Below the pieces are notes generated by a model. That model made no database searches, was not told where the DNA came from, and worked only from the letters and a program-made list of their open reading frames with translations. This document shows, one piece after another, positions 1 through 30,960 of a DNA stretch of 64,000 nucleotides; the first letter of the stretch is position 1, and each line of letters starts with the position of its first letter. Both the position numbers and the translations under genes were made by a program. Source of the DNA: Lepidodermella squamata (taxonomy: Eukaryota; Animalia; Gastrotricha); the NCBI GenBank assembly GCA_047495785.1, contig JBLDXI010000029.1, forward strand, positions 1,426,001 to 1,490,000. Reading direction: 5' to 3'.

Positions 1-1525
1 GAAATATGCAACTTGAGAACTGATTGAAATGACTCCATTTGATATAGATTCGCCTCTTTCTCAGGATAATCATGACCTTTATGTGGAGAAGAATTTCGAA
101 ACCTGAAATAACAGCGATAATGATAAACCAGGCCAGCGGGACCTGGCGCGTTGTCAAGCTTGTGCTTGGTGAGTCTTTTGGCATGTCTCCAGGAGTCAGT
201 GCATTCAACTCGATAAAACTGAAAGATCTCGGATCTGTTACATTGGTAGCATTTTCTTGGAGGGATGAGCGATATCTAACCACCAACCCTTTACCTCGAT
301 GCCAATTCATTATCACCTGAGGCTCGTAATCCCACTCTAACCGCTTCGAGTAGCGAAAACTTCCGTATCTCAGTCCTCTGAAGTTGACCAGACTTGCTGA
401 TAGATTCGCTATTTTCATGACAAGTTCCGGGTTTTTGGCATAGTCGCGAAGGGTCAAGTTCATGCGCTTCAGCTGCCGTTCAGTTTCGTTAAGGACGACA
501 ATGCTCTGGAGAGCAGCGTCGTAGCAAGCGTGTCGAAAAACATCCCCATCCCGCGGGGCGACTCCAGTTCGTTGGAGCATCATCTCATCGAAAGATACCA
601 AACTATTTCCGAGTTCATCAACGCCAGAAGAAGTCGTTGGATTAGCAGCTCCAATTAACAATAGCGACCGGAGTTGCTCAAGGTAGACACTTTGGTTACA
701 TCCTGGCGGATACAACTGGTTAGTAACAGGGTCTATAAAGATTATCGGTGAGATTAGGAACATGTACCTCGGCCCACTAAGTCCGTTTCTATGGGCCATG
801 CAAAGAAAAGCAAGAGTTTGCCTGCCATCAGAGCTTTCAAGGGCGAATATCCGAATATCATCCCGTTTAAAGGATAACATCATCTCATCAGAAATATCAA
901 TGAACGCTTCAAATCGTTGCACCCTAAGTCCGGCGGCTACTGCAATGTCGTAGAAGAGTATACCGTTTTCGACTGCAAAACTGTTAGCTAAAGCCACGAC
1001 TATGGCCAGTTTCCGCCAAGGAGTGAGTCTCTTGATGAAATGAAGGCGAACAACTAGGCCGAGCTCTGTTGAACCTCGAACACGATACATATTCGGGTAA
1101 ATGTTTCGTTTAGCTGTCTGAGCTGGGGATGTGCAAGACCCTGCGATCATCACCATGTTCAAATGATGAGCGATCGATCCCCAAGCCTTGCAACCGGGTG
1201 TTGCAATGGCACCAACCGTAACCGGGGCAATGAAGCTGCGGTTCCGTCCTGAATAAGGTAGATTTTCCCGCACAATATTCACCCCAGCTGCGGCTGCGCT
1301 GGCGGATTGAAGATCCTCGTCTCGTATGTCGAACTCGACTTGGTATCCAGGGAGTAGATTTTGTGAGTTTGCCATTTCTCCGACATATTTGACTGCCAGG
1401 CGGCACCTTTCGAAACTCGGTGGATATTGCGCCAAAATTACCAACCGGTCAGGAATCGCAGTGGCGGTGAATTCGAAAACAGTTAGTAACAACACGCACA
1501 ACAGCAGAGTCTGCAAAGCCAGCAT
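1..1525 (-). CDS. Class C (GABA-B-like) GPCR, subfamily A, 3'-truncated by window edge
   Basis: Not in the ORF track because no stop lies in the window. ATG at 1525 reads MLALQTLLLCVLLLTVFEFTATAIPDRLVILAQYPPSFERCRLAVKYVG...GCKAWGSIAH...YPNMYRVRG. Colinear with 11965..14226 at a constant offset of 12701 nt (position 1 = 12702). Confidence 0.9.
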   Translation of the reverse strand, partial: MLALQTLLLCVLLLTVFEFTATAIPDRLVILAQYPPSFERCRLAVKYVGEMANSQNLLPGYQVEFDIRDEDLQSASAAAAGVNIVRENLPYSGRNRSFIAPVTVGAIATPGCKAWGSIAHHLNMVMIAGSCTSPAQTAKRNIYPNMYRVRGSTELGLVVRLHFIKRLTPWRKLAIVVALANSFAVENGILFYDIAVAAGLRVQRFEAFIDISDEMMLSFKRDDIRIFALESSDGRQTLAFLCMAHRNGLSGPRYMFLISPIIFIDPVTNQLYPPGCNQSVYLEQLRSLLLIGAANPTTSSGVDELGNSLVSFDEMMLQRTGVAPRDGDVFRHACYDAALQSIVVLNETERQLKRMNLTLRDYAKNPELVMKIANLSASLVNFRGLRYGSFRYSKRLEWDYEPQVIMNWHRGKGLVVRYRSSLQENATNVTDPRSFSFIELNALTPGDMPKDSPSTSLTTRQVPLAWFIIIAVISGFEILLHIKVMIILRKRRIYIKWSHFNQFSSCIF

Positions 1526-1809
1526 ATTCGCTCTCGTTTTGAGGAGTTGAAGAGTTGAAGAAGCTGCACTGAATTCGTTAGCTCTACAATTTTTCGTGCT
1601 CGAAGCTCCTATTCGAGGCTAATTCTCAATTTGACAAAGCGTGGTTTATGTGTCGGGCGGAATGCTCACGGGCTTAATTTTTCATAAGAAAAGCACGACC
1701 TTATGTAGTTAATTGGCTGAAAAAATGTGTTGGAAATCGAGCAACGCCACTAGTTCTGATTATCCAAGAAATTCAGCAGAGTTTTCTTTTGAACTCAGGC
1801 GGGCAACTA

Positions 1810-3300
1810 CACTGTAAAAAATAGGGGGGTGATTACCCCGAATTTACTCCATTCAATTGTATGGCGCTTGGGGGGTAAAATGCACACGGGGTGCATTGAA
1901 ATTACTCCTCAGAGTTTTTTTCGTAAGGATTATTTACCACAGAGAGGGTAATTATCTTCCAGCATGTCTTTCATTGCTGAGGGGTAATTACCCTGAAATT
2001 ATTCCTAATTATTTCAATTAAATTGTTAGGAATTATTTTTGAATAAATATTCAAGCAATAAATTATTTTTAATTATTCAATTAAATAATCAATTATTCGA
2101 ATTAATAAGGAGGGTCCCAAGGTATCAGGATGGCACCACATGCCAACAAGTTTAAACTTCTAAAACTTTTAAATTTTCTTCTTTTCATTGCACAATGTTA
2201 ATGAATGATTTGAGCTAGTTTTTTGCAAACAAGCCTTTCTGTGCCGCAACGAATGCGAGCGAGTCGAACAATTTGCATATGCACATGGCTGAGTTCAGCC
2301 ATTATTTAGAATTCGGCTGATTTGAGTTATGAGATTGAATGCATTTCGCAAAGCAAATCGATAAAGTTAATACTCCAACGTTGCACCACCGAATAGCGCT
2401 AGCTCAATTGGGAAGCCACTGCTGATTGAGTGGAGGTGATATTTTAAAGGTGAAAAACTGACTTGAATATTGACTAGGTGGAGCTTCTTAATTGCTTTGA
2501 TTAATTGCTTAGGCATTGCAGTTAATTTGAGTTGAACCAGTCATTACATTTAGATTTATTTTATTAAGATTTAGCGAGGACCCTGTTACTAATTGAGAGC
2601 TATAATCTAGAATCCAATTGAAGAACGATTTTGGAGAGTTAGCGATGCCAGCCACGTTGCCGGCACTAAAATTAGCTGAAATTTTGCGCCATCCCATAGA
2701 TCTTGAAAATTAGCTGCGATCATTGGTTATTTGTGTTTATGTTTAAAATCCAACCCTGAAATAACTCGGCTATGGTAAACCGTATATACCGTATTATCAG
2801 GGAGGGACTTCTAATTTATTCAGGGACCTTTTTTGCCTGGCTTAGGTGACTGCAAAATCGATATCAAAATCTCTGAAAGGATCTTACTGCGCATCATATC
2901 AGCGCTGCAAATACGAAGGTACATATACGGTAAAATTCAGACTCAGGATGTCATTGTGTTTTTGACCATCCTCGACCATGAGATATTTACCAGAGTTTAT
3001 CCTCAACTTTTTTTACTTATGCTAACATGTTTTAGAGGTTTATAACACTAATATTTCATAATTAAAAATCAAATAAATAATTTATTTATTGAAATAAAAT
3101 TAACAAATTTGCGCGAGGGTGATTGCCCTTAGATTGCCACCCAAGAAAAGAATTGCCACAGTTAATTACCACCCAAGGGTATTTACCCCACTTTTACCTT
3201 GGAGCGAATTACCACAAAGAGATAGGCGGGAGCATTTACTCCTCAAAAAATTGAAAAAGGGTAAATACCCAGGGTAATCAGCACCCTATTTTTTACAGTG
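1810..3300. mobile_element. Non-autonomous DNA transposon with CACTG termini (CMC/EnSpm-like)
   Basis: TIR CACTGTAAAAAATAGGG...CCCTATTTTTTACAGTG flanked by TA on both sides; many subterminal TTACC/GGTAA repeats; absent from the paralogous site near 14510 (empty site). Confidence 0.85.
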
Positions 3301-3472
3301 TAGTTATTAACGTTAGATGACGCACATCCACAGCGTTTTTTATGTTTTTCAATTTTCAATCCACTCAAAAATAATGGGTAATTCGAAACTTCAGAATTCA
3401 TTTATCATTTGCCAACTATAACGCATAATGAATTTATGCGCACAAGGAAGAGGGTTCAAAACGATTGCAATA

Positions 3473-4334
3473 CTACTTCAAGTTAGCGAACCGCACCAAT
3501 TCTATCAATTTCGTCACTTCATTTCTACATTGGAGCAGTTGAATAAAATCACGGGGAAGAGCTTGAACCAAACTTCCTAGCACCATAACCGTCACAGATA
3601 GAGCCAGCGATTTCTCCTCGACAAAATCCGTCTCGCAATCAAGAATTCGAGACAGATACATCAAGACAGCCTCGTATTTACGATAGTTCGAATGGTTGCC
3701 TTCGAAAGCAGGCCAGTTTTCGGGTGGCTCAGTTTTCGCAGCGACGGCAATCAGTAAGTTGCAAGTATTTCGCAGGTCGTAGGTCAGGGGAGCCTCAAGT
3801 TGCCCGACTCTTTCAATAAGAACCCTAAAAATTATCTTTGAAGCTGCTGATTCTAAAAATTCTGCTTGATAATGCCGAGTCATGAAGTAACTCTCGGGTC
3901 GCTTTGACCTTGCAGCCCTCTTTCAGTGCCATTGCGACCATTCGAATGCAAGATATTCAACCCCAGAAGGAACCCGATGGCCGACCTCAAATTCAACAGC
4001 CCCCTAGCAAATCGTATCTTCGGGTGTTGAGAAGAGCATCGATAATGGGTAGTAATTTCTTATCAGCCGGTGACTCGACCAAACGTTCAAATGTTTCGAA
4101 ATCGCCGTCGTTTTTAGCGTGATAAGCTGCGGCGGAGTGGAAGGTTTCAAGCAAGTAAATTTCGTTGAGTTTGGCGTGCCATTTACCGAGGCTCATTGTG
4201 CCATTCGTCACAGCGACGGAGTCGATTGGCTTCAGAGCACGTTGCCATTCGTTTGCGATTGTCAGCTCGCGACTGGCGGATTTCGAGTTGCCAGAGCGCA
4301 TGATTTTGTTGAAAGTCTTCACGTGCTTGGCCAT
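3473..4334 (-). pseudogene. Rearranged/chimeric member of the unknown 'RYDL(I/L)G' family
   Basis: ORF 3993..4334 gives the family N-terminus up to RRYDLLG, which joins directly and out of frame to AVEFEVG; 3473..3883 matches the C-terminus of 14674..15972; the central ~140 codons are missing and there are further indels. Confidence 0.8.
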
Positions 4335-5126
4335 ATTTTTATATCAGCCTAGAAATTCGTAAAAATAGTTTGCTGTTGACTTGTATAATTTTATCCTTGA
4401 ATAATATCTAAATCCAATTATTATTTAATATTCAAAATATAAGGGAAAAATTGGGAGATCCCTAGTAATCAGAGCGGGTCTTAAGCGGACGAGAAATGAG
4501 GAAATTAGGAATTTAAAAGTAAAACAAAGAAAATTCTATTAACTTTAAAAACCGGTTCTAATATTTAAACTAGTTCATATGTTACCTCGAACGCGAACTA
4601 TGTTTCCTCCTCCAATAACTGGTTTATTTATTTAACAAACTTCATGCTTAGGGTGAAGGATTACTGCAAAACTGTCAACGTAAGTGACACAGGCTGTTGT
4701 TTTGTCTCAGAGACACAGGTGAAACTAAACAAGATGTGACTCCAGGTGTGACTCCGCCATACATGAAAATTGTTCAACAAATTTCAGTTAAATTCATTGA
4801 AAGATTGGGAAACTTGTAGCGCAATCCCCAGCGTCTCAACAACGTTTTTCGAAGTTAAAAACATAAGAAAATTCTGATAATTAGGTTCTTGTCAAGATGA
4901 TTCATCGGCAAGTAAATATTTTGACTTGTGAAATTTTCGAAGTTCGTCTAAATTTCGCGCTCATTCAGCGGGGCATCATTGAACGCTCTTCGCGGAAAAC
5001 TGCAACTCGAGATTCACCACTGGTTCCCCGGTCGTACATGGGAATAGGCAACGATTTCCGTAAATTCAAGAAAATATATCTCTTAAAAATTTCAACGATA
5101 AAAAATAAAATTTGCTGATGACTGTT

Positions 5127-5310
5127 CGTTTTGGCGTCGTTGAATAACTCGGATGTAGACAATTGTCAGTTTCGAGGTAGAATGTTGGAAGTGGAAAGCG
5201 ATTTGCTTTTGCTTCTTCGTTCACGTAAAAACACCATAATTTACTTGTCATCCGTCGCCTTGAAACTGAAGTAAACAAGCTTAAATCCGAGTTATTCAAC
5301 GACGCTAACG
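5127..5310. mobile_element. Short MITE (same family as 16011..16216)
   Basis: Inverted ends GCGTCGTTGAATAACTCGGAT / ATCCGAGTTATTCAACGACGC; a second copy with similar ends lies at 16011..16216. Confidence 0.65.
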
Positions 5311-5482
5311 TGTTGTAACGGCTTGGACCATTTTTACTGCGAAATTTGGCCTCGAATCTTGGATGTATACATAAGAATGCAAAGAACAAAGAACGAAAAA
5401 AAGTTGCATTTCAATCTTTGATTTTGAAAATATCCTTTTATTTCAAAATTTTGAACAAATTAGCCACCGATGTATAATGCAT

Positions 5483-6685
5483 TTAATAGTCAAAGGAGAG
5501 AAAAAACGACGTCAGAATAGCAACAAAAATTAATGAACAAGAAATAGCCAGCCAAGTCTCAATTGAAGCCATAGAAGCCACAGATTTCGCTCGATCAATT
5601 TGGCTGTCGATGAAAGTCTTTGGAACAACAACAACCTCATTGACCGCAATTCTCCTCTCCGGATCGACACTGGCCAGAAGATCTTGACAAGCTTTTTCGA
5701 AGCCAGCAGAGTCCGATTCCCGGGTTTCATTCGGAGAGAATTCCTTCAGCGCTTCAGACAGCTTCTCGTCTGCCTTAATTTTCTTCAGTTTGTCGAATTC
5801 ATCTCTGATTTCATCAGCAGCCTTCACAGCTCGGGACAGCTGGACGACAACATTTGTGAAAGCGTTCCCGATTGAATCAACGTCAACGCCTCGAACGGTG
5901 AGCGAAATATTTCGCTGTAAAATCGATTTAAATCGATCTTTACCAAGCCAGAATTTGACAAATTGCGACGGCTGGATGTGATCAATATCAGCGAGAAAAT
6001 ACCGAGATCGATTATTCGCCATAGCCAAACTGCAAGCCGCCATCATCATTCCAACTCGATGGCCCTCTTCGACCTCGCCATTTTGAAAAATAAATGAGGT
6101 CAACTTCAAAAATTGCGATAAAAGTTCATGTGAATTTGCGAGATTATTGAAATGATCTCCATATTCATCGCGATCGGTTAGAAAAATCGCCGATAATAAT
6201 TCGCAGATTTTTTTGATGTAACTCTGCCGCCTCAGGCCTCGTCTCGGGTGTTCGAAAATGAAGAGTAATTTGAACACAAATTGTTGGACGTATTCAGAAT
6301 TTGACAGGAAATATCGCCCGATTAAATCGTAGCGTTTCAGCTCGAGAAGTTCGAAACAAATTGGGACCAGTTTTTGGTCGCCGCTAGATTCGAGCAGGGT
6401 GTCGAAAGCTTCGAAATCGCCACTGCCCCAAGCTCCGAGCATGGCGGACATTTGGATGGATTCAATTGAGACAACTTCAGCCAGTGTCGTTTGTCAGATT
6501 TCGTCGCTGATTGAGCCGTTGAGCAGTTGACCGCGGGAAATAGGTTGAAGTACTCGGCGCCATTCGGTGACGACTTTTTCGGCTAAACAGGCCTCACTAG
6601 CGGCGATGCTGCGGTGAGCTGAATAGGTTTGCCTAGCTCTTGGCTGCCCGCGAAAAATTACTAGTAAAATTATTAGTCTCGGCAT
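5483..6685 (-). pseudogene. 'RYDL(I/L)G' family member with N-terminal hydrophobic leader and C-terminal TM helix; one in-frame TGA (pseudogene or readthrough)
   Basis: ORFs 6494..6685 and 5483..6451 are in the same frame, separated by TGA (6494-6496) and 14 open codons; the TGA aligns with a Trp conserved in the other three members. Confidence 0.7.
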
Positions 6686-6944
6686 GCTATGGAAGACAAT
6701 AAACGCGTCATTATTCGGCGTATATTATTTTCCGAAAAATGACGAAAATTCAGGCTAAATTCAACATTTTTAATAATTCGAGGCAAAGGTCTAAAATATT
6801 GTGTCCGGTTATTCTGTTAATCTGGGGGTTTTGCTAACACTTTGGCTATGCTGTATTTTGAGAGCATGTTTGTACCTGAAATTCAGTTGAGGATATGAAG
6901 CCTTGTAGCCATACCACAGGAGGTGAATTTTAAGACCTAGCCTC

Positions 6945-6983
6945 CAACCCAAACCTAACCCAAATCTAACCCTAACCCTAACC
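6945..6983. repeat. Degenerate (CCCTAA)n-like microsatellite
   Basis: CAACCCAAACCTAACCCAAATCTAACCCTAACCCTAACC, about 6 imperfect units. Confidence 0.6.
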
Positions 6984-8123
6984 AGTTAAACAACGAATAA
7001 AATGGTTAGGTATTGAATTAAATGAAATTAGGCACTAAGATTTACGTGCGGTTCATGGAATTCAAGAAATTAACTTTTTCCTCGCTTCTCGTTTCAGATC
7101 CATCGGCAATCTGGTGCACGCTATCATTGCAGCACCTGTCGTCTGTTGACGGTAAATGGCAAGCTGCGGCGAACAGCCGATTCCGTCAGGTAAACAGCTA
7201 AATCAGAGGCAATAATATGGACACGCCAGTACATTTATGAGTGCTCATCACGATGTTTTCCTTCTTCGGTCGCGCGACGGAAGAAATAACTTGATTGGAG
7301 TAATAATCCGTGTATCGCTATTTATTTAAATCTCAATTAGAAGATTGGAATTTTTATTGGTTTTTACATTTGCCCATAGGGTAAAAGCTCCCAATCTCGC
7401 TTAGTTTCTGACACTCTTCAGTCTTACCTGCACATGCCAGCCAAACGAGCGGTGAACTCCTTATAGCTAAAAAAATTACTTTTAAAATGAATGCTCACTC
7501 GCGAACAAATTCCTCACCAAAATCATGAAGTGCGCGCGAAAAATTGAAATCACGTAATTTTGGAAGCCTGTAACTTGTAATGGCTAGGGTTTTCGACCCC
7601 GTAGAACACGAATTTCACTGCAGTTGAGCTTTTGAACGACGGCGATTAATCCATTTACTAAAATAGATGGTTATTCTGCCAGAACGTTAGTTAAGCCAAT
7701 ATTTGTATTAATCATCAATTCTATAGCGAACTTCTCCGATTCATTTTCTCCGATTTTCTGTGAATTTAGAATTCGGCCTAGAAACCAAATTTAATACCAC
7801 TGCATGGTTGGAGGATTCAACCTGAACCTTTGTGTAAAGCATGTGCGGCGCACGCACAGTTGCAACAAGTCCGGAGAAGGCTCACTAAGTTATGCAATAG
7901 AAAGACAATCAATCAATATTATCATTAATACCATTGTTGGAGGTTTGAGAAATCGCATAAAATCGGACAAAATAAATCCAAGTTCGCTCCAAGTAAGATC
8001 ATAAAATAGCTGCGCTCTTAGAATGAAGAATCTACTGCCCTGGAAAAGTCTTTCAAGTTAACTTTCTTCGAATTTCGTATAGCAGCTGTCAGGGTTTATT
8101 TGCGAATAACCAGTTCCTTAACT

Positions 8124-10394
8124 CTAAATGTGTCGTGTCTTTGCTGGGCAGAAGCGTATTTTCTTCTGATTTTTTCTGATTTTCTTTCTATTTTCGTTAT
8201 AATGGAATACGCCATCAGAAACTGAAGCGATCATCACAATGATGGACAGGAAAAGGTCGAAGTAATAACTGGGCGCAATGATGTAGCCAACAGCTGTCGA
8301 AGCTGCAAAAAGGCTCGATGCTACGGCGAACGACAAATTACGAAGTCGAAATGCCGGGCGTTTTTTCATCAAGTTTCGATGCGACTGCATGCGCAAGATA
8401 AAGATGAAGCACATAAACATCACGGTGACATAGAGACATAGAAGAGTCGCTATCCAATTACCAGCCCACGTAGATTCGCAGACAACTGCATCCGTCGTGA
8501 GATAAGTGTCGATAGCTGGGTCGTAAACAAGAGCAGACTTTGACATTGTCGAAGTTGTGACCGGGTCTACAACGAACCAGATGACCAAGACGATCAAATT
8601 GATAGTGACAAATGCTAAAGTGACGGGTATGACCAGTTTATCGCTGTTTCCAATCAATAGAGGCGAAACAGCTGCCCGTACTGTAAGCGTGCTTTCAGTC
8701 GATCTCAAAACAGCAGACTCAATGAAATGTGAGTTGATGACAAGATATCGGCTATTGGACATGATTTTACCGGCAGACAGCCCGAATAGCAACGAAGCTC
8801 CTATTATCAGGGATGTAAAAGCTAGTTGGCAAGACCTTTCCGAACGCTGATGGAAAGTGGTGGGGAAAGAACAAGCTGCAATAGCGAGAAAACCGTAACC
8901 AGACAGCAAAACAAACGATTTGACAGAAAGTTTCATTTTCCACCAAAGAAATACCGCTAGCATAATGAACTGTGATATGGCTGTCGAAGACACGACTGCG
9001 AAAACAGGTAGCGAGATTCCTTCATGTCTTGTCTCATATCTCGGCGAATCAGAAGGCATGGTCTCTGGACTCATAGGAAAGATAGTTCTGAACACGAAAG
9101 CATCGCTCGCTGTGTTGTTTGTCGCATTTGCTGCTAAAGATCCGACGTAGCGAACTTCAAGACCTATGCCTAGCTTCCATGTCATAACGGCCTGAGGTTC
9201 GTAATCCCATTCCAAGCGATTCGAGTAACGAAAATCCCCGAATCTGAGGCTGCGATACCGTATAGAGCTCGTTGATTCATTCGCGATTTTCATAACTAGT
9301 TCGGGGTGATCCCTGTAGTCCTTTAGGCTCATGTTCATCGCTGATAATCGCTTCTCTGTTTCATTGAGCACCATGATAACCTCTAGGGCGGCGTCGTAGC
9401 AGACGTGGCGAAATCCTTCTCCTACTCGAGACATGTTACTAGCGGCAAGAAGACTCTCAAAGCCAGCCTGTGTATTCCCGAGCTCATCAACAATCGACGA
9501 GAGACCAGGGGCTGCTTCAGCTGATCCAATAATCAACGTTGTTTTAAGCTGCTCCATATACATACTCCTCGTACATCCAGAAGGATAGATTTGGTCGACA
9601 TATGGTTCCAGGAAGGAGATGGCTTGAATCAAAAACATGTATCTTGGTCCGGTGATTCCATGTTTGAAGGCCAAGCATAAAAATGTGATAACCATGACTC
9701 CATCGGAGTTCTCAAAGGCGAAAATTCGAACGTCGTCCTTCCTGAAAGATTCCATTATCTCGGCATTCAAGTCGCTGAATGCCTCGAATGGTTGGATTTT
9801 CAAACCAGAGCTAACCGCTAGACTATGGAAGAATGTACCAGCTTCGACTGTATAAGGATTGCCGAGATCCATCACAATGGCAATTTTTCTCCACGTAGTA
9901 AATTGCTTGATGAAATGAAGACGAGCGATCAGGCCGAGTTCAGCCGGACATCGAACTCGGTACATATTCGGGTACAAATCTCGACGGGCTGTTTGAGACG
10001 GAGCTACACAAGAACCGGCTATCATAACCATGTTCATAAATCCGGCAATAGATCCCCAAGCTTTACATCCAGCTGTAGCGATAGGGCCTACACTTACCGG
10101 AGAGACGTAGTATGATTCGTTTCTCGTGCTGGTCACGTGTTCGTTGATAAATTTAACGCCTTCAGTAGCTGGGTTCCCACTGAAAACAACTTCTCTTCTC
10201 ATATCGTAGTCAACGTGATAGCCGGGTAGTAGATTTCGCTGGTTTACGATATCTCCGACATAGAGCATAGCGTATCGGCATCTTTCTAGCTCTGATGGTA
10301 TTTGGGTTAGTATCAGCAATCGATCCGGCGATTTCGACATGATAGGTAAGATCATCACTGCTAGCACAAAGCTTGACATAGTGAGAATAATCAT
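8124..10394 (-). CDS. Class C (GABA-B-like) GPCR, subfamily A, intronless
   Basis: 756 aa; signal peptide; ANF/Venus-flytrap motifs (NQRNLLPGY, GPIATAGC, YPNMYRV, WRKIAIV, YDAA); PSD linker then seven hydrophobic segments with W-x-x-x-DP after TM4. Confidence 0.9.
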   Translation of the reverse strand: MIILTMSSFVLAVMILPIMSKSPDRLLILTQIPSELERCRYAMLYVGDIVNQRNLLPGYHVDYDMRREVVFSGNPATEGVKFINEHVTSTRNESYYVSPVSVGPIATAGCKAWGSIAGFMNMVMIAGSCVAPSQTARRDLYPNMYRVRCPAELGLIARLHFIKQFTTWRKIAIVMDLGNPYTVEAGTFFHSLAVSSGLKIQPFEAFSDLNAEIMESFRKDDVRIFAFENSDGVMVITFLCLAFKHGITGPRYMFLIQAISFLEPYVDQIYPSGCTRSMYMEQLKTTLIIGSAEAAPGLSSIVDELGNTQAGFESLLAASNMSRVGEGFRHVCYDAALEVIMVLNETEKRLSAMNMSLKDYRDHPELVMKIANESTSSIRYRSLRFGDFRYSNRLEWDYEPQAVMTWKLGIGLEVRYVGSLAANATNNTASDAFVFRTIFPMSPETMPSDSPRYETRHEGISLPVFAVVSSTAISQFIMLAVFLWWKMKLSVKSFVLLSGYGFLAIAACSFPTTFHQRSERSCQLAFTSLIIGASLLFGLSAGKIMSNSRYLVINSHFIESAVLRSTESTLTVRAAVSPLLIGNSDKLVIPVTLAFVTINLIVLVIWFVVDPVTTSTMSKSALVYDPAIDTYLTTDAVVCESTWAGNWIATLLCLYVTVMFMCFIFILRMQSHRNLMKKRPAFRLRNLSFAVASSLFAASTAVGYIIAPSYYFDLFLSIIVMIASVSDGVFHYNENRKKIRKNQKKIRFCPAKTRHI

Positions 10395-11964
10395 TCAGCG
10401 TGCAAAGATCCTGATAAAGTCTTTCGCGAATAAGGAGAAGTCGAGTCTAAGAAGTTGTAGATGACAGGACTGAATTCCTTCGGTAGCCGTAATTGGGTGC
10501 AGAGGTTGATTTCGGACACAATTTTCGAGGCTAATTAAAAAACGTGCAGTTGCGTATGTCCAAAATGAAATTAACTTCTACTCAAGTTGTGCATTTCATC
10601 CATTGCGCATACGCCGCAAAAATCACGTTCTGGCTCTCAGCAGGTCACAATAATCAGCTGGCGACTTACTGTTAGATTGCTGAACGAGTTCTAGTTGTTT
10701 GAAGGCTCGGAATTTGACCACATTTGACCACAGATTTTTCAGATTTCAGGACCGAAAGCAATTCACGGCAGGGTGCGATCGTGGATCCTGGAGCTACCAA
10801 GGGGTGGAAAAAATGTCTGCTGTATTTGCCAAAATGAAGAGTCTTTCCAAATAAAAAGCGGGCGGAAACAGGAAATTTTGAAGAGTGGCCACTAAAACAC
10901 GCTCCGAAACCTCTCAAAATTAATGAAACAGTGAGAAAGATTTGGCCGGGCCGGGCCAGACAACAAATGTTCGGCTGTACAAGCTGTACAGGAATAAGAT
11001 GTTTTCCAAGGTCTATCCAATGGTATAAGATTCATTTCATTTTAAAAACGCCTTATAATTGCCGTAATAATTGGAAATGGAAAGACATTTTATTGTGTTA
11101 CACTCATAAGATGAACCAGCCATAGGAATACTTTTACTATCATTTCTTGTTCGCATTCGACCATAATTATATAAAGCTGTTTGCAACGTTCAGAAGCATG
11201 ATTATTGATACATGATGTCGTACTTGTAACTAGGCGCATAATATTGACATTGAGAGTTTTTGAGAGATACCCCGTGATGGATCCAAGTCATCGATTCCTG
11301 AAAAACATTTTACGACTCAAGCTTTCATAAATTCGGCACAGATAACTCAAAAGTTCCGCAAAATCATTTCGGATCGCGACTGTTTTGGATGAGACATTCT
11401 CTGTGGGCGTCAAGTCGAGTTTCCCTGTTGACGGCACGTTATTGACCTAATTCCGAGCTAAGAAAGAACGATTTCTGATAAAGCCTTTTTACAGGATGAT
11501 GACATCAAACCTCAAATCCTGTAAAATGCCATTTTAAAAAAATGAGAATATTAAATAAAAATTTCGGACAGATTTCCTCTCCAACCCCATTCTAGCAAAA
11601 ATTTGAGCGAAGTTTACCTATCGACTAGACCTATCAACTGGTGAAATTTCCTCATGGCTATGAAGATAATGCGATGAACATTTTTTCACGGATACGTTAT
11701 GTTGAGCGATATTTCATTACAGCAAACTCAAGCTGGAAATCTTGTCCAGTTTAAACCTTTAAACCTTACAACGATCCTCCAAGTGATTCTTGAGATTTTT
11801 GTAAGGCTATAATCATCTTGAAGTTCAGGTATGAAATTTTGGCTGTAAACTGAATTTATTCAATCAAAGCCGTCTATATTTAATAAATAAATTTAATAAG
11901 TAAGAGCGTTGCAGTAACTAAATTAGCGTTTTAGCAGATACATAAGATTGTTTTCCACTTTAAA

Positions 11965-14226
11965 CTAGAAGCCAGCTTCAGAACTATTCAGTTTGCTGCT
12001 CCAATTTGACCGGATGTGTAGAAAGCTGTTGGCCGCAATGATAATAAGCATTATCAAGGATAAAATGATGTCGTAGCTGAAGTTGGGCGCCAAAATGTAC
12101 CCGATAACGACAGCAGCTATGAAAAGAGAAGAAGTTAACAAACCGGACAGTTTCGCTGCTTTCATTTCTGGGTACCTTGCCGCAAACCGCTGATTTGCTC
12201 GCATTTTCAGAACGCTAACGATTATTAACGCTATAACAAGCGAATGCAGAGTTATCAGAGCACTAAGCCATTTGCCTATCCATTTCGATGAGCATGTAGT
12301 CACCTCTTCATAAACGTAGGTATCCAACTCTGCGACGTACAGCCCAGGCAATCTCAGAGATGTGTGACAATAAACGGGGTCCATGATTAGCCACATCAGG
12401 GCGACTAAGAAATTCGCCAAGGCGAAAACAGACGTAGTCAAAATATCCAATTTGATTTTGACTTTAAACTGCACATGAACGGTTTTCGAAGCTGAGGAAC
12501 TGTAGCTACTTGTACTTACTGGATACGTTCGCCGGCTTTTGGAGCTTAAACTATTCAAGAATACGTTCATTTGTGTTAATCTTGATAGGGTGCCTCCTGA
12601 TAGAAATGAAACCCCAATAGCCGTAGAAATAAATGTCAGAATGCAATCGGAGTTTGTTCGCATTCTAGCTTCCGTCGAGATCAAACAGGCCGATAAAGCC
12701 AGAAATATGCAACTTGAAACCTGGTTGAAATGACTCCAGTCGACATAAACTCCCTCTTTCTTTACGACTATCATGGTTTTCATGTTAAGAAGAATTTCGC
12801 AACTTGAAATAACAGCGACGATGATAAACCAGGCCAGTGGTACTTGCTGTGTTATCAAGCTTGAGCTTGGTGAGTCAGTTGGCATATCTTTACGACTCAT
12901 GGCATTCAACTCGACAAAACTAAAAGATCTCGGATCTGTTATATTGGTAGCATTTTGTTGGAGGGATGAGCGATATCTGACCACCAAGCCTTTACCTCGA
13001 TGCCAGTTCATTATCACCTGAGGCTCGTAATCCCACTCTAACCGCTTCGAGTAGCGAAAACTTCCGTATCTCAGTCCCCTGAAATCGACCCGACTTGCTG
13101 AAAAATTCGCTATTTTCATAACAAGTTCCGGTTGTTTCGCATAGTCGCGAAGGGTCAAGTTCATAAGTTTTAGCTGTCGCTCAGTTTCATTAAGGACGAC
13201 GAGGCTCTCTAGAGCAGCGTCATAGCAAGAATATTGAAAAACATCCCCTTCTCGTGGAGCGATTCCAGATCGTTGGAGCATCATCTCATCGAACGATGCC
13301 AAACTATTTCCGAGCTCATCAAAGCCAGAAGAAGTCGTTGGATTAGTAGCTCCAATTAACAGTAATGACTGTAGTTGCTCAAGATAGATGCTTTGGTTGC
13401 AACCTGGCGGATACAACTCGTCAGGCTTAGGTTCTAGAAATGCTATCGCCGACGCTAAGAACATGTACCTAGACCCACTGAGTCCGTTTCTATGCGCCAT
13501 GCAAAGAAAATTAAGAGTCAGCCTGCCATCGGCTCCTTCAACCGTGAATATCCGAATTTCTTCCCGTTTAAAGGATAACATCTTCTCATCAGAAATATCA
13601 ATGAATGCTTCAAATCGTTGAACCTTAATTCCTGCGGCCACGGCAATGTCATAGAAGAATATCCCCGTTTCAACGGAGAGACTGTTAGCCAAATCCATGA
13701 CTATGGCTAGTTTGCGCCAAGGAGTGAGTCTCTTGATGAAATGAAGGCGAACAATCAGACCAAGTTCAGCTGGACCTCGAACACGGTACATATTCGGGTA
13801 CAGATTTCGTTTAGCTGTTTGAACTGGAGATGTGCAGGATCCTGCGATCATCACCATGTTCATATAATGAGCGATCGAACCCCAAGCCTTGCAACCGGGC
13901 GTTGCAATAGAACCAACCGTAATCGGGGCAATGTAGCTGCTATTCTGTCCTGAATAAGGTAGCTTTTCCCGGAGAAAATTCACACCGGCCGCGGCCGCCC
14001 TGGCGGTTTGAGGATCGTCGTCTCGTATGTCGAAGTCGATTTGGTATCCAGGGAGTAGATTTTGCGAGTTTGCCACTTCGCCAACATATTTCACTGCCAA
14101 GCGACACCTTTCGAAAGTCGGGGGATATTGTGCTAAAATTACCAACCGGTCAAGAACCGCAGCGGCAGTGAATTCGAAAACAATTAGTAGCAAAAAGGAC
14201 AATCGCAGATTCTGTAATGCTAGCAT
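11965..14226 (-). CDS. Class C (GABA-B-like) GPCR, subfamily A, intronless
   Basis: 753 aa with the same architecture (NLLPGY, GCKAWG, YPNMYRV, CYDAALE, 7TM with WLIMDP). Confidence 0.9.
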   Translation of the reverse strand: MLALQNLRLSFLLLIVFEFTAAAVLDRLVILAQYPPTFERCRLAVKYVGEVANSQNLLPGYQIDFDIRDDDPQTARAAAAGVNFLREKLPYSGQNSSYIAPITVGSIATPGCKAWGSIAHYMNMVMIAGSCTSPVQTAKRNLYPNMYRVRGPAELGLIVRLHFIKRLTPWRKLAIVMDLANSLSVETGIFFYDIAVAAGIKVQRFEAFIDISDEKMLSFKREEIRIFTVEGADGRLTLNFLCMAHRNGLSGSRYMFLASAIAFLEPKPDELYPPGCNQSIYLEQLQSLLLIGATNPTTSSGFDELGNSLASFDEMMLQRSGIAPREGDVFQYSCYDAALESLVVLNETERQLKLMNLTLRDYAKQPELVMKIANFSASRVDFRGLRYGSFRYSKRLEWDYEPQVIMNWHRGKGLVVRYRSSLQQNATNITDPRSFSFVELNAMSRKDMPTDSPSSSLITQQVPLAWFIIVAVISSCEILLNMKTMIVVKKEGVYVDWSHFNQVSSCIFLALSACLISTEARMRTNSDCILTFISTAIGVSFLSGGTLSRLTQMNVFLNSLSSKSRRTYPVSTSSYSSSASKTVHVQFKVKIKLDILTTSVFALANFLVALMWLIMDPVYCHTSLRLPGLYVAELDTYVYEEVTTCSSKWIGKWLSALITLHSLVIALIIVSVLKMRANQRFAARYPEMKAAKLSGLLTSSLFIAAVVIGYILAPNFSYDIILSLIMLIIIAANSFLHIRSNWSSKLNSSEAGF

Positions 14227-14673
14227 ATTCGCTCAAGATTTGCGGAGTGAAAGAAGCCGTCCTTAATTCGTCAGCTCTTAAATTTGATTTGCTCGGAGCG
14301 TCTGTTCGAGGCTAATTCTCAATTTGCCAAAGCGTGGTTTACGGGCGGAATGCTCAAGCGCGTGGAGGGCAGAATTTTCCAAAGGAACAGCACGACTTCA
14401 TGTATATAATTGGCTGGAAGCGTGTGTTGGAAATCAAGCTACGCCACTATATAGTTCTGATTATCCAAGGAATGTAGCAGGTAGAGCTTTTCATTGACCT
14501 CAGGCAGAAATTTAGTGATTAACACTCATCTGCTACTGAGTTCATGCTTTTCAATTTTCAACCCACTCATCAAAAAACTTTAGTTCGAAACTCCAGAATT
14601 TATTGTTTATTTGCCAACTAAAACGGATAATCAATTTTTGCGGACAAGGGAGAGAATTCCAACGGTTACAAAA

Positions 14674-15927
14674 CTACTTCAAATCAGCGAACCGAACTAG
14701 TTTTATCAGTTTCGTCACTTCAAATCTACGCTGGAGCAGTCGAGTAAATTCAATAGGAAGAGATTGAACCAGATTCCCAAGCACCATTGAAGTTGCAGCG
14801 AGAGCCAAACATTTCTCCTTCTGAAGATCTGTCTCACAGTCGAGAATTTGAAACAGATTCAATAAGATGAAACCGTATTCGCGCCGCGTAATGATGGTGC
14901 GAATGCTTGCTTTCGAAAGCAGGCCAGTTTTCGGGTGGCTCATCGCAGCGACGGCAATCAGTAAGTTGCAAGTATTACGCAGGTCGTAGGTCAGGTGAGC
15001 ATCGCGTTGCCCGACTCTTTCAATAATAACCCTAAAAATTCTCTTCGAAGCTGCTGACTCATGAAGTAACTTTCGGGTTTCGTTGACCTTGCAAACCTCT
15101 TTCAGTGCCATAGCGACCAAACGAATGACAAGATTGTCAACTCCAGATGGAACTCGACCGCCAACCTCGAATTCAACAGCTTCACGGGGCCGGTCAGCTG
15201 CAATGAATTGGATAAGGAATTCGACCATATCAGAACGTCCTATCGCTTCGATAAATTCAAGAGGGGTAATGCTCCCGAGGTAGAAAGACTTCGGCTTGAT
15301 AGCATTACTAATCGAAGCAGCGGCCATGAGAACATAAATCACCTCCATAGTTTCCTTCGGCCCATGAGCGAAAAATGTTCTCAAAAATTCGTCGAAGAAT
15401 ACCTTGACGAAGTCGGCGTCAGACGTCAGAATTTTGTAGGAATTTCGAAAAACAGGCCAGTCGACGCAGATACTTTTGGCGTAGAAGTGAATCAGAAACG
15501 CCCCGACGCAGTAAAGTTTGTGGTCTTGTGGCACCTTGCTCATGTAATAAGTCAATTTTCTGCCGTAATAAGCATAAAATCCGGGAATCGATAGCAGGTA
15601 TTTACCAATCAAGTCGTAGCGCTTAGATTCAACCAAAGTTTTCAGGATCGGTGACGTCACTCTTCTGTCAACCGCGAGAACTTTATCAGTATCGAAGCCT
15701 TTCATGCCGATTTTGTCGCGCATCTCCATAGCATGCGAGAAGACGAAGTTATCGAGCATGATAATCTCGCGGATTTCTTCATGCCAGCTGCTTATCTCGA
15801 GTGTATTGTTGAACAATTTGCTGGGGTCAAACCTTCTCAACTGGAAATATTGCCACTTCATGATGTCTTCCATAGTTGGCGGAGGTTCGTTTTTATTTCT
15901 GTGGACAGATCTCAAAAGAGCATTCAT
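14674..15927 (-). CDS. Unknown protein, 'RYDL(I/L)G' family, intact
   Basis: Long open frame (14674..15972; first ATG at 15927, MNALLRS) with similarity to 17779..19065, 5483..6685 and 3473..4334; no domain recognised. Confidence 0.75.
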   Translation of the reverse strand: MNALLRSVHRNKNEPPPTMEDIMKWQYFQLRRFDPSKLFNNTLEISSWHEEIREIIMLDNFVFSHAMEMRDKIGMKGFDTDKVLAVDRRVTSPILKTLVESKRYDLIGKYLLSIPGFYAYYGRKLTYYMSKVPQDHKLYCVGAFLIHFYAKSICVDWPVFRNSYKILTSDADFVKVFFDEFLRTFFAHGPKETMEVIYVLMAAASISNAIKPKSFYLGSITPLEFIEAIGRSDMVEFLIQFIAADRPREAVEFEVGGRVPSGVDNLVIRLVAMALKEVCKVNETRKLLHESAASKRIFRVIIERVGQRDAHLTYDLRNTCNLLIAVAAMSHPKTGLLSKASIRTIITRREYGFILLNLFQILDCETDLQKEKCLALAATSMVLGNLVQSLPIEFTRLLQRRFEVTKLIKLVRFADLK

Positions 15928-16010
15928 TGTTCCGGATAGAATGTAAAATGTATATAAGCCTAAAATAAACAATTAAAATACAAATAATGATGGATATTGG
16001 CTGGTTTAAG

Positions 16011-16216
16011 ATATCGTTAGCGTCGTTGGATGGAAGAATTCGGATTTAGGCTTGTTTAAGTAGGTTACACAACTAAAGGTGACATGAATAAAGGTCATTT
16101 GTTTCACCTCTCCATTCACGCACCACGCACAAAGGCCACTTTTTGATCGTCACCGTTCACTTTGAAACAGGCATTAACAAGCCTAAACCTGAGTTATTCA
16201 ACGTCACTAACGATAT
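16011..16216. mobile_element. Short MITE (same family as 5127..5310)
   Basis: Inverted ends ATATCGTTAGCGTCGTTG...TTTAGGCTTGTT / AACAAGCCTAAA...CAACGTCACTAACGATAT. Confidence 0.65.
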
Positions 16217-16264
16217 GAATAGAATAATTAACATATAATACGGTCACTTGAGAAAATAAGCTCG

Positions 16265-17454
16265 ATTCCGGGCACATATTAGTTTCGACCTACCCACGAA
16301 CGCAGGTTGCACAATCAAAGGGCAAAAGTGGACTGACTTCTAACAATATGTTGGCCGCGCGCGCTGAGGTCAAAGGATTACCTTCGAATATCGCGGAGGT
16401 TTTTACGCTAAAAAATAATTTACTCGAATAGGTATGGGGGTTCTCGCGCGAAAACGCGAAATACGCGCGCGTTAAATTGTGTGCGCAAGTTGATATCACG
16501 CGCACTCGCCTCTCGAAAGTAAAAATGCGCCGATTCCTGCGGTGGTTTTGCGGTACTTCGGCCGGTAGATTTACGGTACTACTGCCGCGGACTAAAAATA
16601 GAAAAAATAGAAAAAGAAATTTGACTTCTACCCCGGTTGAAAGAACCAAAATTTAAGCCAAGCAAACATTACCGATAGCCGGCTAAATTCTCTTCATTCC
16701 AAATTGAATCTCATTGCGAAAGGTCGCGGTGAAATTCGCCAAAAATGGCCAAATCGCGACATTTTGGCAAACTTTCCTGTGGATTGTGGACGAACGGACC
16801 ATCCCCGGCGTTAAGGTCGGATAGTGTTGGATAGCCGGGTTGATTAGCTATAAGATACACGCGGCTCAACTTGCGCCAGCTTGAATCTCATTGCGAAATG
16901 TCGCGTTGAAAACGTTGATTTTTTATCGCATTCTGTCTTATATATTTGTTATTCGTTATTCTAAAAAAATGTATTGCTATCATAGTTGTTTACGTTTTAT
17001 TACTTATTAATGGCAGTGCTCGGCCACGTGGTCATATTATAACCTCATTCATAATGCCACTTACGCTGGAGAAATGAGTAATAATCGCGTATTGCACTCA
17101 TAATAAATGAAAATCAGGTCATTGCGGCCTCTTTTAATTTTCAACCGAAATTGTTGGCTGAAATTAAGAAGTTAAGAGGTACTTTTTCGGTAGAAATTCC
17201 GAAAAACTACGAAAATATTCGTATTAAGCGCTTTCTCGTTCCCCTTTTTCACGCGAGAAACCTAATTCGGCAGTTCAGCGAGTTGTCTGAATTATTTTTT
17301 GGTATAAATACCGCCTGAAAAATCAATAATAGTCCTTTGGCATTACCGCGCGCGACCTTGAAAAGTATACAAATGCTCGACTTAGCGCTCGCGCAATCTT
17401 TTTACTCTTCAACCGACGCTTGGGGGCCGGATGAAACTAATATAGGCTCGGAAT
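16265..17454. mobile_element. Non-autonomous TIR element
   Basis: ATTCCGGGCACATATTAGTTTCGACC versus GGATGAAACTAATATAGGCTCGGAAT; internal direct repeat TTGAATCTCATTGCGAAA (~16704 and 16881); a similar left end recurs at 30730. Confidence 0.65.
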
Positions 17455-17778
17455 TAAGCAGAAAATAAGAGGTATGAACAGGATTCATTGTGCACGCACG
17501 TCCCGTGCAGAGAACAATTGCACCTCAGTTTGTTTCTCCTGCTGCCCTATGCTGTTCGTTCGGGCTTCATGGGCATCAATCATCTACCCAGGATTTTCGT
17601 TAGAAAATCGTAAAAACCGATTAGCACACCCTAACCCGGGGTACTACCCCAATTTTTCAAAAATTTTGAAATTTTGAAATTTTAAATTGTAAAATCACGT
17701 ACCTTTGAACCTGCTTATTAGATTCATCACTCACAGCAAATTAAAATATTGCTCTCTTTTATTTGCGGAGGAGAAACA

Positions 17779-19065
17779 TTAGCGCAGTTTTATTTTCAGG
17801 ATTTTTACAAGGTTCAGTCGACGAGCGTTTTTCTTGACATTCTCAGCGGCTTCCGGCCCGTAGGATGTAATCAACCGACTGAGAACAATCGCAGACGCCA
17901 TGGCCGCAATAAGCCGCTCATCCGAAGATAAATCGACCATCAGGTGCTGTAGCTTTATCATCAGCATATCAAACCCATCCGATCCTATGCCGATCATCAC
18001 CTCCTTGGGACTCAGTGGACTTTTAGTTTTGTCGATGAGAGATCCTAGAATCAGTAGCAAATTCGAGGTTAGATTCAAATTCTTCGTTAAACTTGAGTCG
18101 ATAAGGATCGTCGAGACCACGTTCAGTAGCTCTCTAGGAGACTTGGAGCACATCAACTGAACCGAATCGGATTGGGATTTTGTCGCTTGCCTGATCGCAA
18201 GGGCAAGAACTCGAGCGATGTTGTTGCTAGCTTCTCGATAGGCAGGCCCCAATTTCGGACTATCAACCTTTTCAATGCGCTCGCCGGATAGAAAAGAAGA
18301 CAGGATCGGCTTGTTGTGCGATGAGGTAACGCTTTCCATGAATTGTCGTGCTGTGAATTTGCCCATCATGAAAAATTTCGGCGAGCTGATTGCCGAAAAA
18401 TTAGCCGTAGCCATCAGAGTCGCTTCAACAGGTATGCCGGGGACGAAGTCATCCTGCAATACCAAGGAGGCAAATTCGAAGAAAGGATTTGTGAAAATTC
18501 GATCCTTGGCCAACTTTTCATAGCTTGGCCCGTAATCCGGATGTCTAATAGACAGACTGTTGGCAATCAAAGATGCTATCCAAGCGTAACTTTTGAGACC
18601 TTCGCCATGTTTTTTGACCACCTTGGCTAGGAATAACAGCTTCTTTGCATAGTGTGTGTAGAACATCGGAAAGGAAATGAAGTAACGACCGATCAAGTCG
18701 TATCGGTCAGCAGCGACAAGCTTCTCAAAAATTCGGCTGAAAATCAGGAGATCGACCGGTGTTCGCATGAGCTTTTCGAATGTTTCGTAACCCACACTTC
18801 GAACTGTAGCAATTGTTGAGAAAATCATCCTATCTCTTGCGATAATGCCGTCGAACATCAGCGCCCTCCAAGCTTTAGGGTCCATTGTACCATTGAGAAC
18901 GGCCGAGACTGTTTCGTCTTTGTTGATTGTTTTGAAATCGCGTTCGCTATCTGCCATTTGGCTGGCGGTCATAGGCTGGCTTCGATCACCGATTTCACGG
19001 GCAACTTCTTTGTGCATGTAACGCAAAACTTCGTCCAGACCCTCGTCATCGATGTCCGAATCCAT
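17779..19065 (-). CDS. Unknown protein, 'RYDL(I/L)G' family, intact
   Basis: 428 aa ATG-initiated ORF; motifs AVLNGTM, YETFEKL, DRYDLIGRYF and NLNLTSNLLL are shared with neighbouring family members. Confidence 0.8.
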   Translation of the reverse strand: MDSDIDDEGLDEVLRYMHKEVAREIGDRSQPMTASQMADSERDFKTINKDETVSAVLNGTMDPKAWRALMFDGIIARDRMIFSTIATVRSVGYETFEKLMRTPVDLLIFSRIFEKLVAADRYDLIGRYFISFPMFYTHYAKKLLFLAKVVKKHGEGLKSYAWIASLIANSLSIRHPDYGPSYEKLAKDRIFTNPFFEFASLVLQDDFVPGIPVEATLMATANFSAISSPKFFMMGKFTARQFMESVTSSHNKPILSSFLSGERIEKVDSPKLGPAYREASNNIARVLALAIRQATKSQSDSVQLMCSKSPRELLNVVSTILIDSSLTKNLNLTSNLLLILGSLIDKTKSPLSPKEVMIGIGSDGFDMLMIKLQHLMVDLSSDERLIAAMASAIVLSRLITSYGPEAAENVKKNARRLNLVKILKIKLR

Positions 19066-19852
19066 GGCGTTTTGTAAAACAAACGAAGAAGTCTAAATAG
19101 ATACAACCTTAGAAACCCCAGAAATAGTAATATTAGGCTGGTGTCGTATGACTAAAATCAATCTTTTTGCTTGGAGAATGAAAAGCACTGCTAGTGTGGC
19201 CGGAAATAGTTTGTTTTAGATAGAAAGGGCGATTGAATGCGGCGAGAATTACTCTCAGAATCATAAGTATTTACTACTACTCTATTGAGTAGATATGAAA
19301 AGAAAAAATTGTAACAAGCACGTGCGCGGTTCCAAGTCATTCACATTATTTCATAACGTTATTTTTCCTCACACAAACTCTTTGAGGCCAGATGAGGAAT
19401 TCTGCAAAATTCTCAGTGGACGAAACCGAAACACGCTGGAGGTGACATCTGGGGATTTCATCAGTCGGGAAAGAGACGAGAGGCGCTCAGCTCAAGAAGT
19501 GGTGTTGCCACCGTCAGCACTAGGACGCAGAAGAGACAAACAACAGTTCTAGTTGGGCAAGCGATAGCAATTCGGGATCAGCGGGTTGAATTCTGTATTA
19601 ATTGATGAAAGCATTAAAGGAAACACTAATTTCAATTTTCCTAATATTTAACTACCCCGTGGTGCCATGTAAACCACTGAAAATGTTGAGGCCCATCATA
19701 TACCAATATTAGGAGCCAGATGATGCTCAAGAAGAATTTGATGACACAAACGATGCAAAGGACGCATAACATTTTATTCGGATGAGATAGAAAGGATCAT
19801 TCAGTGTTCACAGAATATTTTCGCCTATCGAAATCATGAATAAGTGCCCATC

Positions 19853-30729: not shown

Positions 30730-30960
30730 ATTCCGGGCCCATATTAGTTCCGTCCAGTCGGAGGGTGAAAGTGGACTTAGCGCAAAACGTTTAAAGTCGA
30801 AAATTTTAGAAATTTCAATGCCGCGTGCGAAAAAGTCAAGTTTTTATTATTTAGGCGGTTTTTACACCAAAAGATAGTTCAGAAAAATCTCTATCGAATA
30901 GATATGGATTTCTCGCGTGAAAAATTAAGCCTGAGCAGCCTTAATTTTGAAGTAAATTAC
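30730..30960. mobile_element. Truncated copy of the 16265..17454 element (right boundary approximate)
   Basis: ATTCCGGGCCCATATTAGTT...AAAGTGGACT similar to 16265-16335. Confidence 0.45.

Follow-up and report, generated by a model that had tools for sequence, protein, structure and literature searches.

The left part of a 64,000-nucleotide stretch of the gastrotrich Lepidodermella squamata genome (assembly GCA_047495785.1, contig JBLDXI010000029.1, positions 1,426,001 to 1,490,000; hereafter the window) holds four related loci, X1 to X4, that lie interleaved with genes for class C-like G-protein-coupled receptors (GPCRs; G1 to G3). The locus raises the question of whether the X proteins work with these receptors or are bystanders in a region prone to duplication. 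All statements about the locus refer to this single 64-kb window. As the preliminary description had it, the seven X and receptor loci of the left 19 kb all lie on the minus strand and the order is G1-X1-X2-G2-G3-X3-X4. We consider, with a probability of about 0.6, that X1-X4 are a lineage-restricted, fast-evolving family of cytosolic, all-helical proteins of ~420 amino acids that undergoes birth-and-death turnover as a bystander near the receptors. Of the two alternatives first offered, a bystander family in a duplicating region is thus the one favoured, and a two-gene system of receptor and partner found no support.

It is clear from tblastn that the four loci are paralogues, with E values ranging from 1e-9 to 1e-43 (X3 against X4, 3e-25; X4 against X2, 1e-9; the N-terminal part of X1 against X2, 5e-18; the C-terminal part of X1 against X3, 8e-43); searches of the window with all X pieces found no copy outside 3473-19065. 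The motifs originally listed are present: N[GN][TS]x5W in X1 (NGTMSLGKW), X3 (NNTLEISSW) and X4 (NGTMDPKAW), (F/Y)E(T/A)F in X1, X2 and X4 and missing from X3, RYDL(I/L)G in 4/4 loci, and an LMAA-like motif in X2, X3 and X4. At just 27% identity to each other, X3 and X4 have each retained the common motifs and an open frame longer than 415 codons. A domain architecture can be proposed from a structural model of X3 (see below) and from the extent of the tblastn matches; an N-terminal domain of ~215 residues, common to all members, would bear NGT-x5-W, FETF, RYDLIGRY and LMAA, and a C-terminal helical domain of ~155 residues would be found in X3, X4 and the remnant of X1. X2 is homologous to X3 and X4 over its N-terminal ~220 residues only, and a coiled-coil-like stretch and a tail anchor would stand in place of the C-terminal domain. 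The C-terminal part of X2 is charged and coiled-coil-like and ends in a transmembrane (TM) segment of tail-anchor type (residues 294-322 of a 322-residue open reading frame (ORF); Kyte-Doolittle hydropathy 2.29). By hydropathy neither X3 nor X4 has a TM segment or a leader. The membrane helix of X2 alone, and the solubility of X3 and X4, therefore stand as first described; the leader once ascribed to X2 does not, being an 8-residue hydrophobic run that falls under the hydropathy threshold.

Four homologous minus-strand loci were thus recovered by tblastn, but not the four genes that had been proposed, as X1 (3473-4334) is a frameshifted chimera and X2 has an in-frame TGA. The X1 locus measures 862 nt, which is not divisible by 3; codons ~112-249 are absent and the C-terminal part is in another frame than the N-terminal part. 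The C-terminal part, which shares 62% amino acid and 76.5% nucleotide identity with X3, carries two more frameshifts and a ~29-nt duplication. With these lesions X1 is a chimeric pseudogene. Its source could be located by blastn (12702-14505 against 1-1800, 83.8% identity; 14541-15180 against 3339-4000, 76.5%), the copied part of G3 within the limits of the window being its 5' 1.5 kb. The upstream end of the duplication lies inside X3, at codon ~249, and is fused there, in a different frame, with the 5' portion of an older gene; this N-terminal part of X1 is 40% identical to X2 and 26-31% identical to X3 and X4. In the segmental duplication of G3 just the 3' part of X3 was carried along, and its fusion in the wrong frame with an older gene resembling X2 gave the dead chimera X1.

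The ratio of non-synonymous to synonymous substitution (dN/dS) was 0.26 for G1 and G3, 0.46 for the C-terminal part of X1 and X3, and ~0.26 for the N-terminal part of X1 and X2. By these values the receptor copy G1 has remained under constraint; that on the X copy is weaker, and this copy is broken. The identities of the N-terminal parts also bear on how the older copies arose. The pairing of X1 with X2 and of X3 with X4 gives the highest sum (39.5 + 27 = 66.5, against 25.7 + 27.5 = 53.2 and 30.6 + 25 = 55.6 for the other pairings); were receptor-X blocks the unit of duplication, X1 should group with X3 and X2 with X4, and the identities favour otherwise. The grouping ((X1,X2),(X3,X4)), in which X1 stands for its N-terminal part, seems, on this evidence, to be the pattern of local tandem duplication and not of receptor-X blocks. 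The earlier view that the family had been co-duplicated with the receptors is therefore borne out by one partial segmental duplication only, and weakened by the truncation of its X3 copy and by the local tandem origin indicated for the older X copies.

A 1.5-kb insertion with terminal inverted repeats (AACTACACTGTAAAAAATAGGG...) lies between G1 and X1 and is missing from the homologous spacer between G3 and X3, and so was inserted after the duplication. It contains no ORF of more than 70 amino acids and is probably a non-autonomous DNA transposon.

X2 reads NGSISDEI-TGA where X1 has NGTMSLGKW and X4 NGTMDPKAW; the TGA (6494-6496) falls on the conserved Trp codon, TGG, from which it differs by one base. 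The ORF after the stop (5483-6451) is open for 322 amino acids. Since these later codons stay open, the stop may have arisen recently, may be polymorphic or due to misassembly, or the gene may have shifted its start to the ATG at 6451. Reading of the TGA as Trp or selenocysteine was rejected as improbable: at this position the paralogues encode Trp rather than Cys, and recoding is required by no other feature of the window, though no search for a selenocysteine insertion sequence (SECIS) or for TGA usage elsewhere was made.

In the turnover proposed here, X2 would have been struck by the change of TGG to TGA at its conserved Trp, with X3 and X4 remaining intact and transcribed. The transcription of these two genes was judged from a single small run of 2015, whose RNA type was guessed and which was chosen because it contains X3 and X4; 87% of the sampled words of X3, and of X4, are found in it. 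Contigs of this RNA-like run were mapped on 13101-19100, so that coverage of G3 could be judged over its 5' half, 13101-14226. The contigs are colinear with the genome and cover only 14.5-15.9 kb (X3, depth 17-35) and 17.7-19.1 kb (X4, depth 12-44), thus the two ORFs with short untranslated regions. Depth was zero over the 5' half of G3 and over the spacers at 14.3-14.5 and 16.3-17.5 kb, except for a blip at a high-copy repeat, and there was no splice-type skip joint inside the X3 or X4 ORF. This coverage is what an RNA library containing two unspliced transcripts, X3 and X4, would give. Polyadenylation (polyA) signals of the form AATAAA or ATTAAA are found 15-70 nt past the stops of X2, X3 and X4, with that of X4 at 15 nt and that of X3 at 62-69 nt.

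A DNA run of 2024, labelled with the name of another organism, spans all of this mapped segment at ~110x, with differences of 1-2%. Between it and X3 there are 12 listed differences, 6 synonymous and 6 non-synonymous; no frameshift or stop is among them, and 2 more in one contig are unlisted. A count of 6:6 corresponds to a ratio of non-synonymous to synonymous polymorphism (pN/pS) of about 0.3 and to moderate constraint, similar to the 4 to 3 of G3, both being small counts. Of the X3 variants at which the 2024 DNA run is fixed, most recur at partial depth in the RNA-like run, and because of this they are alleles, both of them transcribed. Two haplotypes ~1-2% apart are seemingly common to the RNA-like and 2024 DNA samples.

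In the spacer between X3 and X4 the summed contig depth of the DNA run rises to ~4330x at 16101-16300 and to ~550x at 17100-17500, compared with ~110x elsewhere; both segments are high-copy repeats. A 64-nt piece of the first (16149-16212) is repeated at 5247-5310, downstream of X2, and 17245-17383 is similar to 30794-30924. The positions of the genes and segments discussed are collected in Table 1.

Table 1. Coordinates in the window of the X loci, the receptor genes and the associated segments.
Feature	Position	Strand	Description	Basis
X1, C-terminal part	3473..4000	-	pseudogene; copy of X3 codons ~249-417	tblastn, blastn, sequence reading
X1, N-terminal part	3993..4334	-	113 codons; nearest X2 (40% identity); ends RYDLLG-GC-stop at junction of duplicated segment	
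X2	5483..6685	-	TGA 6494-6496 in frame	sequence reading, tblastn, hydropathy
X3	14674..15927	-	intact, 417 residues, soluble, isoelectric point 9.3	open ORF
X4	17779..19065	-	intact, 428 residues, soluble, isoelectric point 9.2	open ORF
Source of segmental duplication	12702..15180		5' 1.5 kb of G3, spacer and 3' 40% of X3	blastn
Insertion	1805..3305		1.5 kb; 34-bp terminal inverted repeats	self-blastn (1805-1838 against 3305-3272, 94%)
G1	1..1477	-	class C-like receptor gene; extends past left edge of window	tblastn
G2	8124..10394	-	intronless ANF_receptor + multi-TM receptor, 756 residues	ORF, Pfam, hydropathy
G3	11965..14226	-	intronless ANF_receptor + multi-TM receptor, 753 residues	ORF, Pfam, hydropathy
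Further receptor locus	24935-26791		ORF ends after ~3 TM segments	
Further receptor loci	31206-33530, 35733-38009, 38630-40948			
Further receptor locus	54294-56929		broken into several ORFs, by introns or frameshifts	

Relatives of the X proteins were sought widely. In Pfam searches at E ≤ 10 with whole X proteins and with their N- and C-terminal domains no family reached its cut-off, and the best stray matches (E 0.017-0.17) were to unrelated families. One of these, to Peripla_BP_5 in X4 (E 0.017), raised the question of descent from the flytrap domain of a receptor; this origin was rejected, the profile-profile probability being 0.1%. No homologue was found by a word search with X4 among 5.8 billion clustered proteins, no relative by an exhaustive hidden Markov model (HMM) profile search of 1.84 billion representative proteins, and none by a sequence profile search of the PDB. 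On JGI metagenome contigs there were 316 pattern matches, of which 0 were confirmed. Exact look-ups of the X3, X4, X2c, G2, G3 and G6 proteins, and of X3 also on contigs, gave no match.

The X3 structure was modelled with AlphaFold2 (AF2) from six sequences, with a predicted local distance difference test score (pLDDT) of 62 and a predicted template modelling score (pTM) of 0.62. The model is all-helical. Its confident part is residues ~30-240 (pLDDT 70-90), followed by a disordered linker (244-261), and over most of 305-417 pLDDT drops below 50; residues 104-413 form about six triplets of a short, a medium and a long helix, in the manner of armadillo repeats. A first AF2 model, of X4 from 3 sequences, had a pLDDT of 48 and was also all-helical; searches with its shape in Foldseek and Atlas were not informative. 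That the proteins have no recognisable domain and are all-helical, as first suggested, agrees with the Pfam searches and with both models. With the X3 model the best Foldseek matches were not significant (E 0.05 and TM-score 0.27 in AFDB; E 0.37 in the PDB). The Foldseek lists are rich in ARM/HEAT proteins, none significant (ARMC8, symplekin, beta-catenin, APC, MO25 and Syo1). The top VIA-align matches among 48,161 chains are all solenoids, with Z of 9.0-11.1 against a helical-repeat background of up to ~13; partners at Z 9-11 were SPIN90, Sil1, Timeless-N, Ufd2, CTNNBL1, CNOT9, APC-ARM, beta-catenin, UNC-45 and V-ATPase H. The Atlas language-model neighbours were Arm_4, DUF3689, Ric8, UNC45-central, V-ATPase_H_N and Arm, all under membership level, and the Atlas recognition scores of 1551 and 1785 compare with 2300 typical of known families. 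Comparison of the N- and C-terminal halves of X revealed no repeat in the sequence. Structure and language-model searches taken together point weakly to the ARM/HEAT solenoid class, and X is probably an alpha-solenoid of armadillo type, placed in no family. Based on this predicted fold class, its molecular role would most plausibly be that of a protein-protein interaction scaffold or adaptor.

Pfam places an ANF_receptor domain in G2 (E 1.6e-9) and in G3 (E 4.4e-14), and by hydropathy each has a signal peptide and, after residue ~455, about 7 hydrophobic segments. The Pfam 7tm_3 model has no match in either. The predicted layout of these neighbouring genes is that of class C-like GPCRs, a flytrap (ANF_receptor) domain followed by seven TM helices. 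The reading frames of G1, G2 and G3 are open, G1 as far as the window reaches; G1 is 80% identical to G3 in amino acids (tblastn), and the receptors are grouped as ((G1,G3),G2). Five further ANF_receptor/multi-TM loci (G4-G8), on both strands and 24-33% identical to G2 and G3, lie at 24.9-57 kb, and tblastn of all X pieces against the window found no X neighbour beside them; X-adjacent receptor loci are thus 3 of the 8 in the window. Word-based searches with G3 and with an alignment of five receptors found no homologue. Directly upstream of X4 is a large WD40-repeat gene (20045-23979, minus strand), whose long exons, one of 410 and one of 293 codons, are just 29 nt apart. This gene suggests that the genome is generally intron-poor, so that the intronless state of X and of the receptors is not special.

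Several lines of evidence lead us to think that the interleaving probably arose incidentally, from tandem and segmental duplications within a region prone to them, and is not that of a two-gene functional unit. The only joint duplication cuts X3 and leaves a pseudogene. Two of the four X copies are broken, the X grouping follows local tandems, and five receptors have no X neighbour. Further, the 5' half of G3 has zero depth in the very run that shows X3 and X4.

A first alternative, which we think unlikely, is that the X family supplies the neighbouring divergent class C-like receptors with dedicated partners in the cytosol (a trafficking chaperone, a sorting adaptor or a signalling scaffold), kept in linkage and diversifying with them. 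Each X locus of the window lies beside a receptor gene of its own strand, the spacer between X3 and G3 is short (447 bp), and one duplication moved receptor and X sequence jointly. The solenoid class includes helpers of GPCR pathways (Ric-8; GPRASP, PMC11522827), Ric8 is a language-model neighbour at 0.92, and one member is tail-anchored, like some receptor chaperones. Other points speak against it. The adjacencies are not independent, being products of local duplication, and the joint duplication truncated X to a pseudogene; 2/4 X copies are disrupted, against open frames in all of G1-G3, and ((X1,X2),(X3,X4)) is unlike the receptor grouping ((G1,G3),G2). Five receptors of the window do without an X neighbour, and the 5' half of G3 was at zero depth where X3 and X4 were seen. 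Moreover, Ric8, Arm_2 and every other accessory-protein Pfam model went unmatched at E ≤ 10, and Ric-8 is outside the top 50 structures. A bolder form of the same idea is that X3 and X4 are founders of a new class of cytosolic armadillo-like adaptors for a lineage-specific radiation of intronless class C-like receptors; these would act in receptor folding, in export or in sorting after endocytosis, with X2 as a putative form anchored in the membrane, and the linkage would have been kept by co-evolution. This whole set of claims, taken jointly, we hold to be unlikely.

To a similarly low degree one might suppose that X is young and largely functionless, a set of transcribed ORFs drifting to loss of which X3 and X4 are merely the ones as yet unbroken. 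Half of the X copies are disrupted, protein and metagenome searches found no homologue, the Atlas scores are low (1551 and 1785 against 2300), and half of the X3 polymorphism is non-synonymous. The retention of frames of more than 415 codons and of the motifs by X3 and X4 at 27% identity, however, needs long-term purifying selection. Consistent with such selection are a dN/dS of ~0.26 between the N-terminal part of X1 and X2, and the 6:6 of X3, which amounts to a pN/pS of ~0.3 and not of 1. Both X3 and X4 are transcribed, with polyA signals, and the N-terminal domain reached a pLDDT of 70-90 from just six sequences. Descent of X from a mobile element or virus, domesticated or still mobile and inserted beside the receptors, is very improbable and largely refuted: X is intronless, multi-copy and without cellular homologues, and repeats and one element with terminal inverted repeats do lie in the spacers, but no Pfam transposase, integrase, reverse transcriptase or viral family matched, libraries that include metagenomes and viruses gave nothing, self-blastn found no terminal repeats around any X gene, the element at 1805-3305 is separate from X1, and other genes of the window, receptors included, are likewise intron-poor. 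The transposon- or virus-derived family against which the preliminary description had set its own proposal was accordingly sought in Pfam and in protein and metagenome libraries, with no match. The remaining probability is reserved for explanations not yet thought of.

Several points weigh against the reading of X as a bystander family in birth-and-death turnover. All four X loci (4/4) adjoin receptor genes on the same strand, and G3 begins 447 bp downstream of the X3 stop. The zero depth of G3 is that of its 5' half in one sample, which is not absence of co-expression. Expression itself rests on one small run of guessed RNA type, picked for holding X3 and X4, and the polymorphism counts are small, with 2 differences in one contig unlisted. 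The proteome of L. squamata and those of close relatives appear to be absent from the protein libraries, in which the receptors, too, were unmatched by word search; the absence of relatives therefore says little on the breadth of lineages in which the family occurs. The fold call is weak, with Foldseek E above 0.05, TM-scores below 0.4 and VIA-align Z within the background; the Atlas matches share fewer than 170 features, and the C-terminal half of both models has a pLDDT below 50.

The rest of the window adds few recognisably conserved animal genes. Among these, by eye, is a KLF/Sp-type C2H2 zinc-finger gene of at least 2 exons (47567-48843, plus strand). Rfam and tRNA scans of the window returned a single tRNA-Leu (anticodon TAA; 58908-58991, minus strand), between ORFs 57775-58317 and 59393-59887. 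By eye these ORFs look like two exons of a globin-like gene, so that the tRNA may be intronic; similar two-ORF globin-like pairs are seen at 60561-61621 and possibly at 51165-53203.

The X family is real and undescribed, yet ordinary, a lineage-specific helical family in birth-and-death turnover. If it is a bystander it is one more lineage-specific orphan family, and interleaving within a tandem array is to be taken as weak evidence of a functional pair. The family would then be of use in annotating this genome, to which it contributes two real genes and two pseudogenes, along with a segmental duplication that is dated. If X were instead a receptor partner, it would provide a genetic handle on how the class C receptors of a little-studied animal lineage, a large and divergent radiation, are trafficked or coupled, and would be of real interest for research on receptors and chemosensation.

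Comparison with known systems can be made at the level of fold, of function and of mode of evolution. ARM/HEAT solenoids (the ARM domains of beta-catenin and APC, Sil1, SPIN90, CTNNBL1, the UNC-45 central domain and V-ATPase H) resemble X in being all-helical and soluble, of ~400 amino acids, with the three-helix pattern seen in the model. X differs from them in having no Arm, HEAT or TPR-clan Pfam match at E ≤ 10 and no internal sequence repeat; to our knowledge NGTx5W and RYDLIGRY are not signatures of ARM proteins. Ric-8 (synembryn) is an ARM/HEAT-like soluble helical solenoid, conserved across animals and fungi, which acts as chaperone and exchange factor of G-alpha in GPCR signalling. Among the named Atlas neighbours of X3 a Ric8 cluster comes first, scoring 0.92 on 141 shared features, where 170 are typical of true family members; across the queries this lead scored 0.89-0.92 with 129-141 shared features. 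Against kinship with Ric-8, PF10165 has no match, no Ric-8 is in the top 50 of 48,161 chains, and X is shorter and lineage-restricted.

The GPRASP/ARMCX genes arose by tandem expansion in a single lineage and have intronless coding regions, and some of their products bind receptor tails and steer trafficking. They are GPCR-associated sorting proteins with an Arm_2 domain (PMC5865771, PMC11522827), GPRASP being a solenoid helper of the GPCR pathway (PMC11522827). Their likeness to X lies in an ARM-like helical domain and in a role of the kind that the partner hypothesis would need; X lacks a match to Arm_2 (E ≤ 10), and GPRASP/ARMCX genes are not known to be interleaved with receptor genes. The known GPCR accessory families in Pfam (RAMP, RTP, REEP and ODR-4-like) were none of them matched by X. 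Lineage-specific orphan arrays in birth-and-death turnover represent a mode of evolution and not a function, and X is like them in forming a tandem array of intact, nonsense-hit and chimeric copies, in being without outside relatives, and in the divergence and moderate constraint of its paralogues.

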